Translations under genes and position numbers: made by a program | Shown: piece after piece, positions 20,368 to 31,155 of the stretch | How positions within the stretch are numbered: position 1 is the first letter of the stretch | Layout: each line of letters starts with the position of its first letter | The notes under the pieces: model-generated | Database searches by the model: none | What the model saw: only the letters and a program-made list of their open reading frames with translations | Told to the model about the DNA's origin: nothing | Sequence record: ON529853.1 | Reading direction: 5' to 3' (one strand) | Length of the DNA stretch: 64,000 nt

Positions 20368-20838
20368 ATGGCGGTTCTCGACATCGGCTCGTGGAAGCCC
20401 TGGCCCTCGGGCGCCTTGTCCAACTTCCCGCCCCACGCCTTCGTGTTCGAAGACGTCGAGTGCGCCTCCATGGAGGGGCTGGTCCAGGCGTTCAAGTTCA
20501 ATGAGCCCTATAAGCAGGTCATCACCTGCAAGGCCGTGGGCGAGGCCGCCAAAAACATGGGCCGCCGGCGCAACCTGCATTGGCAGCGCGCCCAGACCCT
20601 GTGGTGGAAGTCCGACGCCTACGACCGGCATGGCCCCGAATATCAGGCCCTGCTGGATCGCGCCTACAACGCCCTGGCGACCAACCCCGATTTCCGCGAC
20701 GCCTTGCTCGCGACGGGCGATCACTTCCTGACCCATTCGATCGGCGGGCGTGACCCGCACGAGACCATCCTGACCGAAGCCGAGTTCTGCACCCGGCTGA
20801 TGCGGCTGCGCCGCGAAATCCGCGAAGGCCTGAGATGA
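20368..20838 (+). CDS. NADAR (YbiA-like) family protein
   Basis: LSNF...SMEGLVQAFKF, AKNMGR and FRDALLATGDHFLTH motifs. Confidence 0.65.
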   Translation: MAVLDIGSWKPWPSGALSNFPPHAFVFEDVECASMEGLVQAFKFNEPYKQVITCKAVGEAAKNMGRRRNLHWQRAQTLWWKSDAYDRHGPEYQALLDRAYNALATNPDFRDALLATGDHFLTHSIGGRDPHETILTEAEFCTRLMRLRREIREGLR

Positions 20839-21181: not shown

Positions 21182-22381
21182 GTGAGCACCTTTGCTGTTC
21201 CGATCCTCGCGATCGACGACGTCTACGATCACCCCAACGCTGATCGCCTCTCCATCATCCGTATTCGCGGCTACGAAGCCGTCGCCGGCAAGGCCGAGGA
21301 CGGCTCGCACCGCTTCGCCAAGGGCGAGCGCATCATCTACGTGCCCGAGGGCGCGGTGGTGCCGGACCAGCACCTGAAAGAGCGCGGATACTGGAACGAG
21401 GCCAAGGGCGTCGGTCTGCTGGCGGGCACAAAAGGCAACCGCGTCAAGGCCATCACCCTGCGCGGGGTGCTGAGCCAAGGCCTGGTGTGGAAATCCTACC
21501 GGCTTCCGGGTGAATCGCTGTTCAGCGATCGCGTGCACGCTTCCTACTCGGCGGGTGAGGGTCGCGTGGCCCTGCACACCTACGGCGTCGGCGACGACGT
21601 CGCCGACTTCTTCGGCATCACCAAGTACGACCCGCCGATCCCGCCGGGCCTGGACGGCGACGTCGTCGGCATCTTCGAATCGATGTTCAACTACGACATC
21701 GAGAACGCCAAGGCCTTCCCGAACCTGTTCACCGAGGACGACATCGTCACGGTGACGGAGAAGCTGCACGGCACCTTCTGCCGCATGACCTACATGCCCG
21801 GCATCGAGCCGCGCGAGGACCTGTTCGGCGACGGCCGCGTGGCGATCACCTCCAAGGGTCTGGGCGCCGACGGCCTGGTGTTCAAGAACACCGCCTTCAA
21901 TCGCCAGAAGAACGTCTACGTGCGCAACATGCTGCCCCTGGTGGACCACTTCGTCTCGGCCTGCAACCAGGACGCCAAGGGCCTGACGGTTCACCTGATG
22001 GGCGAGGTCTACGGAGCCGGCGTGCAGGACCTGAAGTACGGTCGCACCGAGGACCAGGGCTTCGCCGCCTTCGACGTCTGGATCGAGAAGTCGGGATTCC
22101 TGGCCGAGGTCGAGAAGGACTACGCCTGCATCGCCTTCGGGGTGGAGCGAGTGCCGGTCCTGTTCGAGGGCTTCTACGACAAGGCGCTGATCGAAGACTT
22201 CGCCAAGGGCGACACCACGATCGACGGCGCCGAGAACATCCGCGAAGGCGTCGTCGTGACCCTGACCGGCGAGCAGGACAAACGCCCCGACGGCAACGGC
22301 CTGGGCGGCACCCTGCGCCCGATCTGCAAGGTCGTGTCGGAAGCCTACCTGACCCGCAAGGGCGGGACCGAACTGCAATAG
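21182..22381 (+). CDS. RNA ligase, Rnl2/DRB0094-like family
   Basis: N-terminal HPNADRL OB-like domain, TEKLHGT (motif I), GEVYG, FDV and REGVV. Confidence 0.85.
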   Translation: MSTFAVPILAIDDVYDHPNADRLSIIRIRGYEAVAGKAEDGSHRFAKGERIIYVPEGAVVPDQHLKERGYWNEAKGVGLLAGTKGNRVKAITLRGVLSQGLVWKSYRLPGESLFSDRVHASYSAGEGRVALHTYGVGDDVADFFGITKYDPPIPPGLDGDVVGIFESMFNYDIENAKAFPNLFTEDDIVTVTEKLHGTFCRMTYMPGIEPREDLFGDGRVAITSKGLGADGLVFKNTAFNRQKNVYVRNMLPLVDHFVSACNQDAKGLTVHLMGEVYGAGVQDLKYGRTEDQGFAAFDVWIEKSGFLAEVEKDYACIAFGVERVPVLFEGFYDKALIEDFAKGDTTIDGAENIREGVVVTLTGEQDKRPDGNGLGGTLRPICKVVSEAYLTRKGGTELQ

Positions 22382-25515: not shown

Positions 25516-25549
25516 AAAAGGCCCGTCGCTGTCGAGCGCCGGGCCTTTG
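25516..25549. terminator. Bidirectional terminator closing the RNA island
   Basis: AAAAGGCCCG...CGGGCCTTTG. Confidence 0.7.
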
Positions 25550-25556
25550 ATCGTGA

Positions 25557-25643
25557 TGGAGGTGCGACCTGGACTCGAACCAGGATGAGGGTTTCCCCTA
25601 CGGCTTATGAGGCCGCTGCCTATTCCAGCCGCGCCACCGCACC
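25557..25643 (-). tRNA. tRNA with CAT anticodon and long variable arm (Met or Ile2 unresolved)
   Basis: Acceptor GGTGCGG/TCGCACC + TCCA; anticodon arm GCGGC-CTCATAA-GCCGT; variable arm AGGG-GAAA-CCCT; T arm CCTGG-TTCGAGT-CCAGG. The D stem is weak. Confidence 0.7.
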
Positions 25644-25644
25644 A

Positions 25645-25830
25645 AAAAGAAGTCCAGGCGTGCTCCCGTTACACTAAACCGGCGAGGGTCATGACCCTCG
25701 GGCGCCGGCTGCGGGGTTGAACCGCTCTGCCTGTGTTTCCGCCGCTGCGCCATGCGAGCGCCGGCCGCGAAGCCAACGCCTGAGGGCTCGAACCCCGGCG
25801 ACGAAGATTCGGACCAGCCCGTCGGCCGGT
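25645..25830 (-). ncRNA. Two tandem circularly permuted tRNA-like modules (YrlA-like)
   Basis: Each reads T arm, then loop-closed acceptor stem, then D arm. Example: GCGG-TTCAACC-CCGC, AGCCGGC..GCCGGTT, GTGT-AACGGGA-GCAC. Confidence 0.5.
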
Positions 25831-25873
25831 CCACGAACGCCGCTGCGCCGAGGGAGGCGCCGAGGCGATCGAA

Positions 25874-25951
25874 TGGGAGCGGGGACACGATTCGAACGTG
25901 CGATCTCTTGGTTATGAGCCAAGAATGTTGACCGGGCTACACTACCCCGCG
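25874..25951 (-). tRNA. tRNA-Met(CAT), initiator-like
   Basis: CGCGGGG 5' end with 1:72 mismatch, CTTGG-CTCATAA-CCAAG, GCACG-TTCGAAT-CGTGT, encoded CCA. Confidence 0.85.
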
Positions 25952-30979: not shown

Positions 30980-31155
30980 AGAAGCGTATGGTGGATCGAC
31001 AGGGGAACCGGCGGAAAGGCGCCGTTTGGACTATCGTTCTAACCAACTGAACTACCGCCGCGCCCGAGGGTGCGCCGGGTGGGACTCGAACCCACGACCT
31101 ACAGTGTGCGAAGAATGCCTCTCCTTCACCACCTGTCGACCCGCCATACGCTTCT
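30980..31155 (-). ncRNA. YrlA-like Y RNA (permuted tRNA domain)
   Basis: 24-bp terminal stem; GTGGTGAAGG motif; T arm GTGGG-TTCGAGT-CCCAC; loop-closed acceptor stem; D arm GTTC-AGTTGGTTA-GAAC. Confidence 0.8.

Follow-up and report, generated by a model that had tools for sequence, protein, structure and literature searches.

YrlA-type RNAs are the best-known bacterial tRNA mimics. In permuted tRNA genes of the Cyanidioschyzon type the 3' half (T arm, acceptor 3' strand) is encoded before the 5' half (acceptor 5' strand, D arm). RNAC and RNAD of phage T4 are located in the T4 tRNA cluster, and to our knowledge T4 has no Ro60. The definition of YrlA RNAs given by Chen et al. 2014 (PMC4201824) comprises a terminal stem, the motif GNCGAAN0-1G near the 5' end and a location within 4 kb of rsr on the same strand; the authors list tandem tRNA genes among the false positives that YrlA models pick up. 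In vertebrates the motif contacted by Ro60 is GGUCCGA, and Ro60 reads mainly one strand (PMC4201824). RNAC and RNAD are RNAs of yet unknown functions (PMC9697503).

The spacer described here is a conserved, structurally constrained non-coding RNA that consists of two permuted tRNA-like domains related to the effector-type domain of YrlA. As in YrlA Y RNAs (RF02553; PMC4201824; 10.1101/312249), the order is T arm, closed acceptor-like stem, D arm, the chain enters and leaves via the equivalent of the anticodon stem, the tRNA tertiary signature nucleotides are kept, one domain is homologous to its counterpart in a Y RNA that lies next to rsr in this phage, and the phage encodes Ro60 (Rsr). Unlike YrlA, the element has two domains in tandem, each closed by itself, without a long stem of 5' and 3' ends and without the GNCGAA-type motif or its clade variant, it stays below any Rfam score, and it lies inside a tRNA/tmRNA operon and not beside rsr, 25 kb away from it in Colossusvirus. 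Its 3' half precedes its 5' half as in the Cyanidioschyzon-type genes, yet the element encodes no anticodon loop, a conserved hairpin caps its acceptor stem and there is no sign that it matures to a decoding tRNA. Tandem tRNA genes present the same linear order, the T arm of one gene being followed by the D arm of the next, and our covariance model weakly matches tRNA-Gln/tRNA-Gln junctions, whereas the element contains no complete tRNAs and its stems pair and covary within each module. RNAC and RNAD are likewise small phage RNAs tied to a tRNA gene cluster.

The window, i.e., the whole 64,000-nt stretch of DNA that was analysed, derives from Brevundimonas phage vB_BpoS-Bambus (ON529853.1, 100% identity), a 348-kb member of the Dolichocephalovirinae. 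The relevant genes of its RNA/rsr region are all encoded on the minus strand: several Y-RNA-like elements (31330-30480), rsr with its TROVE and VWA domains (30450-29065), a tRNA-Cys(GCA) with a long class-II-like variable arm (26825-26739) and a two-piece tmRNA (26662-26405). On the same strand, the tandem element occupies the 230-nt spacer that leads from a tRNA-Met(CAT) (25874..25951; C1/U72 mismatch, encoded CCA; detected by ARAGORN and by the Rfam tRNA model at 53.2 bits) to a tRNA(CAT) with a long class-II-like variable arm (25557..25643; ARAGORN), 3' of which lies the sole terminator-like site of the minus strand (25521..25537). The public record ON529853.1 carries no annotation in this spacer. 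An open reading frame of 96 codons at 25598-25888 was ruled out as coding; as indels of 1 nt (between phages ~93% identical), 2 nt and 66 nt break this frame among close relatives, the spacer is non-coding. Public runs that match the spacer are wastewater and virome 'RNA-Seq' libraries, probably of DNA, and hold short identical contigs only, which give neither ends nor levels. A few kb from the RNA cluster the plus strand encodes an Rnl-type RNA ligase (PF09414 and an OB fold; 21182-22381) and a Gp30.3/NADAR-like protein (20368-20838), a neighbourhood flavoured by RNA repair.

A covariance model of both modules (R1) matched beyond the Brevundimonas phages, in CcrColossus (46.6 bits) and CcrPW (38.6 bits), each time directly 5' of the long-arm tRNA(CAT). 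The fetched loci contain the tandem element at the same site in nine phages, namely seven Brevundimonas phages, CcrColossus and CcrPW, and whole-genome searches with R1, which among these positives covered Bambus, Domovoi, Kikimora, CcrColossus and CcrPW, returned one strong match each. Among the grounds that the initial annotation had named against its own reading is a lack of conservation; the element is preserved in nine phages. Helicase-anchored and tRNA-anchored scans of IMG/VR gave no further full homologues, a pattern for module 1 recovered from IMG/VR only CcrColossus and CcrPW themselves, and two pattern scans of metagenome contigs produced no genuine match, although the IMG/VR and metagenome patterns were strict, making absence weak evidence. 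Separate from these homologues, the one weak match of the wider search (L156 9855-9985) resembles module 2 alone and lies between tRNA-Asp and tRNA-Ala of an unrelated tRNA array; it combines a closing stem and a D arm with a 7-bp acceptor stem that carries a long insert. Single permuted modules with a Gln-type D arm were also seen in large tRNA arrays of unrelated phage contigs (L009, L024, L028, L034, L093 and L096), and as for L156 the fetched flanks contained no rsr.

RNAalifold, applied to the aligned Brevundimonas-phage spacers, folded them into two independently closed, circularly permuted tRNA-like domains in tandem, module 1 at 25805-25738 and module 2 at 25733-25655, both on the minus strand, as are all features below. 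At the place of the anticodon stem of a tRNA, each module has a covarying stem that closes it separately, and it combines a canonical T loop with a loop-capped acceptor-like stem without free ends and a GG-containing hairpin in the position of the D arm. Module 1 is built on P1, a 9-bp stem, whose 5' strand TTCGTCGCC (25797..25805) carries a basal CTTC that is invariant in nine of nine phages and whose 3' strand is GCGGCGGA (25738..25745); four to five of the nine P1 pairs show compensatory changes and the three basal pairs are invariant. Enclosed by P1 are T arm 1 (25782..25796), a 4-bp stem with the 7-nt T loop TTCGAGC that shows one compensatory pair and one single-side change, a closed acceptor-like stem of 4 bp, a 1x1 mismatch, 5 bp and a tetraloop (25757..25780; compensatory in four of nine pairs), and a hairpin of 2 bp with the 5-nt loop ATGGC at the D-arm position (25747..25755), the TGG of which is invariant in all seven Brevundimonas phages. 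The 4-nt hinge AACA (25734..25737) connects the modules and is part of a conserved GGAWAMAC block. At their specified positions, the three basal P1 pairs, the preceding C and the hinge are the same in all nine phages (pattern CTTC paired with GGA, followed by A-N-A-C), whereas the rest of P1 covaries, and this invariance of P1 base and hinge is unexplained by tRNA mimicry.

Module 2 is closed by the 5-bp stem P2, formed by CAGGC (25729..25733), which corresponds to the 3' half of the anticodon stem, and GCCTG (25655..25659), with compensatory changes in two of the five pairs. P2 encloses T arm 2 (25711..25725; GCGG, loop TTCAACC, CCGC), which is supported by the fold and by an ARAGORN cloverleaf after un-permuting, and a closed, covarying acceptor stem (25677..25710), in which 7 bp of acceptor length (25710-25704 with 25683-25677) lead over a bulge of 4 nt (25703-25700) to a hairpin of 6 bp that caps the stem (25699-25684); GCCGGC/GCCGGT of this stem is replaced by GTCGAC/GTCGAT in Kikimora. 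Next comes a TA at the positions of tRNA residues 8/9, followed by D arm 2 (25660..25674; GTGT, loop AACGGGA, GCAC).

We aligned the Bambus spacer with those of Marchewka, Domovoi, Papperlapapp and Kabachok (230 nt) and of Kikimora and Gurke (168 nt); in this MAFFT alignment 98.3% of the cells are paired and 17 of the 50 pairs show compensatory changes, whereas sliding the partners by 1-3 columns leaves 0-2 compensatory pairs and none of 500 shuffles reaches the observed value. Upon addition of CcrColossus, compensatory changes extend to 26 of 50 pairs, with at least one in each of the nine helices, compared to 1-6 in the shifted controls, an alignment that was fitted to the covariance model and hence favours the structure. 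The single-sequence MFE folds of Domovoi and Kikimora adopt the same two-module architecture. Folds and covariation together establish what the initial annotation had seen between the two CAT tRNAs, two consecutive units of T arm, closed stem and D arm, the first with only a 2-bp hairpin in the place of the D arm, and the structural constraint on the tandem element is kept across four phage lineages.

When module 2 of Bambus or Kikimora was un-permuted in silico, by placing an artificial 7-nt loop at P2 and opening the capped acceptor stem, ARAGORN called a regular 70-nt cloverleaf tRNA, the isotype of which stems from the artificial loop alone. In its native order module 2 gave no ARAGORN tRNA call, and neither ARAGORN nor the Rfam tRNA model (RF00005) called a tRNA in 25873-25644. 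Since the cloverleaf is called only in the un-permuted order, module 2 is a complete, circularly permuted tRNA body. Module 1 is a reduced version, in which the T loop and the GG loop are kept and the other elements are too reduced for a tRNA.

The relationship to Y RNAs is evident at the level of the domain. At 30920-30859, in the rsr-proximal Y RNA, the module-2 half of the covariance model finds the tRNA-like domain with 31.3 bits (E 1.8e-6), and in Kikimora the full model weakly matches (20 bits) a Y RNA upstream of rsr. The near-identity of D arms to which the initial annotation had drawn attention is there, GTGTAACGGGAGCAC at 25674-25660 and GTGTAACGGTAGCAC at 30877-30863, but the motif is a generic D arm of tRNA-Gln type: 58 of its 89 in-tRNA occurrences in IMG/VR are in tRNA-Gln. 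Outside tRNAs, 13 of 30 IMG/VR occurrences are preceded by a T loop 18-45 nt upstream, in the same permuted order; five of these 13 permuted modules adjoin an rsr homologue, and the others lie within tRNA arrays, with no rsr in the fetched flanks.

In contrast to the domain, the part of a Y RNA that is docked by Ro60 could not be recognised. The YrlA covariance model suggested as a check (RF02553, gathering score 69 bits) gave no match at E <= 10 in either gathering or E-value mode, whether the region or 241 nt alone were searched. To obtain a clade-specific description of the docking site we aligned rsr-adjacent Y RNAs of CcrColossus (six copies), Kikimora, Bambus and Xanthomonas phage Tabio (59% identity in Rsr) as well as of IMG/VR contigs. 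These Y RNAs of the rsr clade share a two-part 5' signature, GGUGGCGYAG and, ~10 nt further, (U)UACUUC(G), 15-45 nt before the T loop, which looks like a clade variant of GNCGAAN0-1G plus a second box. The signature occurs in the window's Y RNAs at 31135-31109 and 30642-30616 (minus strand), and was also noted in loci L131 (CcrColossus, upstream of rsr), L130 (Kikimora), L164 (Tabio), L077, L089 and L100. A PSSM of the motif trained on 15 rsr-adjacent Y RNAs, all from outside the window, gave its two highest scores among ~128,000 positions to the window Y RNAs that start at 31135 (rank 1) and 30642 (rank 2), whereas among the homologues of the tandem element its best score was 6.7 bits (Domovoi), with all others at or below 0 and only the basal CTTC in common. 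With these low PSSM scores and no Rfam YrlA match, the canonical Ro60 docking site is absent from the tandem element. TGGCGYAG by itself was rejected as a specific box; it is over-represented across the window (22 found versus 5.7 expected) and thus not diagnostic. With both strands counted, four of its copies fall in minus-strand non-coding RNAs, at 25752, 26023, 28923 and 30638.

The ends of the spacer do not resemble those of a Y RNA either. Five phages of the Bambus group carry a 66-nt block of two hairpins 5' of module 1, which is absent from Kikimora, Gurke, CcrColossus and CcrPW: hairpin A (25834..25871), predicted by RNAalifold, in which one pair alternates between G-C, G.U and A-U among the five phages, and hairpin B (25811..25832; GGACCGGCC, loop GACG, GGCTGGTCC), predicted by MFE and RNAalifold and invariant in the five. 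No paralogues of hairpins A and B were found within the window. The string GGCTGGTCCGA (25809..25819), in which GGUCCGA is contained and which the initial annotation had equated with the 5' end of human Y RNAs, is present, but instead of forming an RNA end it belongs half to the 3' strand of hairpin B and half to the 5-nt junction to P1. This exact 11-mer is unique in the window, with an estimated ~0.1 chance occurrences per window, and the 7-mer GGTCCGA is not enriched there (15 found versus 18.8 expected); the 11-mer is suggestive at most. A caveat raised at the outset, that GGCTGGTCC might pair locally, proved justified, as both MFE and RNAalifold form the 9-bp hairpin with GGACCGGCC. This local hairpin wins over a terminal stem between GGCTGGTCC and the 3' tail in MFE and consensus folds alike, and together with the absence of the block from four homologues it led us to reject such a stem. 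The T-run at the 3' end of the spacer exists in Bambus, in the single-stranded 11-nt tail GACTTCTTTTT (25644..25654), but not as a Y-RNA end: it is unconserved, Kikimora having GCATCACCTCAC with CCTCAC in place of the T-run, and the next tRNA adjoins directly. A terminator at the T-run was likewise discarded, as none is predicted. Since each module is closed by its own covarying stem, the element has no terminal 5'/3' stem; its flanks show no conserved pairing and the 5' hairpins are lineage-specific. Hence, of the proposal that the spacer encodes a Y RNA with two tRNA domains, or two short ones, the conserved two-domain RNA and the Y-RNA homology of its second domain stand, while the Y-RNA ends fall away.

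Based on these data we propose, with moderate confidence, that the spacer yields a tandem tRNA-mimic RNA that is released from the tRNA operon and acts by tRNA mimicry without a canonical Ro60 site. The element would then represent a new, tandem version of the tRNA mimic known from YrlA, with tRNA processing as its probable route of release. As no promoter-like or terminator-like site was found in or beside the spacer, we infer that the element is cotranscribed in one transcript with tRNA-Cys, tmRNA, tRNA-Met and the downstream tRNA(CAT), which it precedes. Its 5' end would be set by 3' maturation of the upstream tRNA-Met and its 3' end by RNase P cleavage at the 5' end of the downstream tRNA(CAT), giving an RNA of ~165 nt, or ~230 nt in the Bambus group. 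The released RNA would offer two tRNA-shaped elbows to tRNA-binding proteins and, by analogy with YrlA Y RNAs, for whose tRNA-like effector-binding module such a role has been proposed, may serve as an adaptor or a decoy. Because the canonical docking site is absent, the RNA would be connected with the phage Ro60 (Rsr) indirectly, if at all, or via a non-canonical site.

That such a site exists, making the element a true Y RNA that partners directly with the phage Ro60/Rsr and tethers one or two tRNA-binding effectors, is possible, although we regard it as rather unlikely. Candidate sites are the GGUCCGA at the hairpin-B junction in the Bambus group and the invariant P1 base and hinge in the nine phages. 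The homology of module 2, a paralogue of the Y-RNA domain, agrees with this reading, and so does the phage distribution at first sight. A tblastn search with Rsr over the phage collection found rsr in exactly nine Dolichocephalovirinae, the nine carriers of the element, while phiCbK, CcrRogue, BL57, CcrBL9 and CcrSC had neither rsr nor a match to R1; the element thus accompanies rsr in nine of nine rsr-bearing phages versus none of five rsr-less ones. Yet in a phylogeny of the neighbouring helicase all rsr-positive phages fall into a single clade (support 93/94), and because a single gain or loss in that clade explains the pattern, the co-occurrence was rejected as independent functional evidence. 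(The neighbouring SNF2 helicase of Domovoi, ON529855.1, 219336-222311, is a two-piece match within one 993-codon open frame, which points to an insertion, for example an intein or an additional domain.)

The position relative to rsr is similarly divided. The initial annotation had placed the block 3-4 kb from rsr, and in the seven Brevundimonas phages it does lie ~3.2 kb downstream on the same strand, which speaks for a Y RNA; in CcrColossus (rsr at 107.1-108.5 kb, element at 133.4 kb) and CcrPW (rsr at 115 kb, element at 141.7 kb) the distance is 25-26 kb, which speaks against it. As to the candidate sites, GGUCCGA (25815-25809) is identical to the motif that Ro60 contacts in vertebrates, where mainly one strand is read, but it is confined to the five phages of the Bambus group, where part of it lies within hairpin B, and hairpin B is missing in four of the nine phages. 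The CTTC/GGAWAMAC at the base of P1 is invariant throughout, whereas the clade 5' motif stays at or below 6.7 bits in all homologues, next to the missing Rfam YrlA match and terminal stem. A more elaborate version, a bivalent Y RNA in which the invariant hinge between two L-shaped mimics is a strand-swapped dock for Ro60, two tRNA-binding effectors are tethered to one Ro60 ring and tRNA enzymes do the processing in place of an own promoter and terminator, appears to us distinctly unlikely. In this version the 7-bp acceptor stem of module 2 might in addition be opened by RNase P, as in the YrlA of M. smegmatis.

Compared to the released tRNA mimic that we favour, it is less likely still that the folded spacer works in cis only, insulating or guiding the processing of tRNAs and tmRNA for instance as a tRNA-like handle for RNase P, RNase Z or RNase E, to be discarded afterwards, a role that we consider improbable. 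The location in a tRNA operon with processing sites on both sides would suit such a role, and the hinge, invariant and rich in AU, may provide a site of the RNase E type. Comparison with the rsr-less relatives bears on this point. In phiCbK-type phages a different, single YrlA-type module of T arm, closed stem and D arm lies directly 5' of the long-arm tRNA(CAT) (phiCbK, NC_019405.1 ~104147-104214; L126 2423-2490), which scores 29.7 bits against the tRNA-like part of the Rfam YrlA model and is 76% identical over 70 nt to the rsr-adjacent YrlA of Xanthomonas phages such as Tabio, while CcrRogue has no tRNA-like module at the site 5' of tRNA(CAT). This turnover at one site is in keeping with a cis role, but CcrRogue matures the same tRNA without such a module, and the T loops, GG loops, TA at 8/9 and 7-bp acceptor kept across four lineages exceed the needs of a spacer; the retained tertiary-contact nucleotides make a cis-only processing role the less likely one. 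As phiCbK-type phages have the module and no rsr, tRNA mimics at the operon site need no phage Ro60.

The CAT-CAT spacers of the Caulobacter phages contain a further conserved non-coding block, GACAAGC..GGAGAGAACG..GCACTCC.., which is absent in the Brevundimonas phages (L126 ~2150-2390, L128 ~2260-2500, L127 ~2140-2230). Next to the tRNA/tmRNA cluster of phiCbK and BL57, a GOLLD RNA (Rfam RF02032, 165-170 bits) is found around tRNA-Gly (L126 564-1050 and L129 503-989, minus strand).

We disfavour as very improbable that the modules are relics, i.e., decaying tRNA pseudogenes or a chance junction of tandem tRNAs in which a T arm is followed by a D arm. Weak matches of the model (~21 bits) to tandem tRNA-Gln genes in CcrColossus and CcrPW show that this order can be imitated by dimeric tRNAs; against this, compensatory changes occur in all nine helices, the closed stems are kept closed and no flanking tRNA halves were found. 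An origin from the tRNA-Gln tandem junction was rejected, the similarity being only that of tRNAs in general (z ~3). Least credible of all is that module 2 represents a permuted tRNA gene whose RNA is ligated or made circular, perhaps by the phage RNA ligase encoded nearby, and then opened at the acceptor stem to a working tRNA, for although it un-permutes to a perfect cloverleaf and the Rnl-type ligase gene is at hand, no CCA follows the acceptor strand and no anticodon-loop nucleotides are conserved, the P2-flanking sequences differing between lineages and showing no U33-type pattern.

A tandem mimic released from the tRNA operon, as we propose, has a bearing beyond this locus. A two-domain mimic without a recognisable Ro60 site separates the question of what the tRNA mimic binds from the question of what Ro60 does, and among the giant phages that have retained the element is CcrColossus, the host of which, Caulobacter, is amenable to genetics. 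Our results further indicate that phage tRNA clusters can hide processed non-coding RNAs that are missed by standard annotation and by Rfam.
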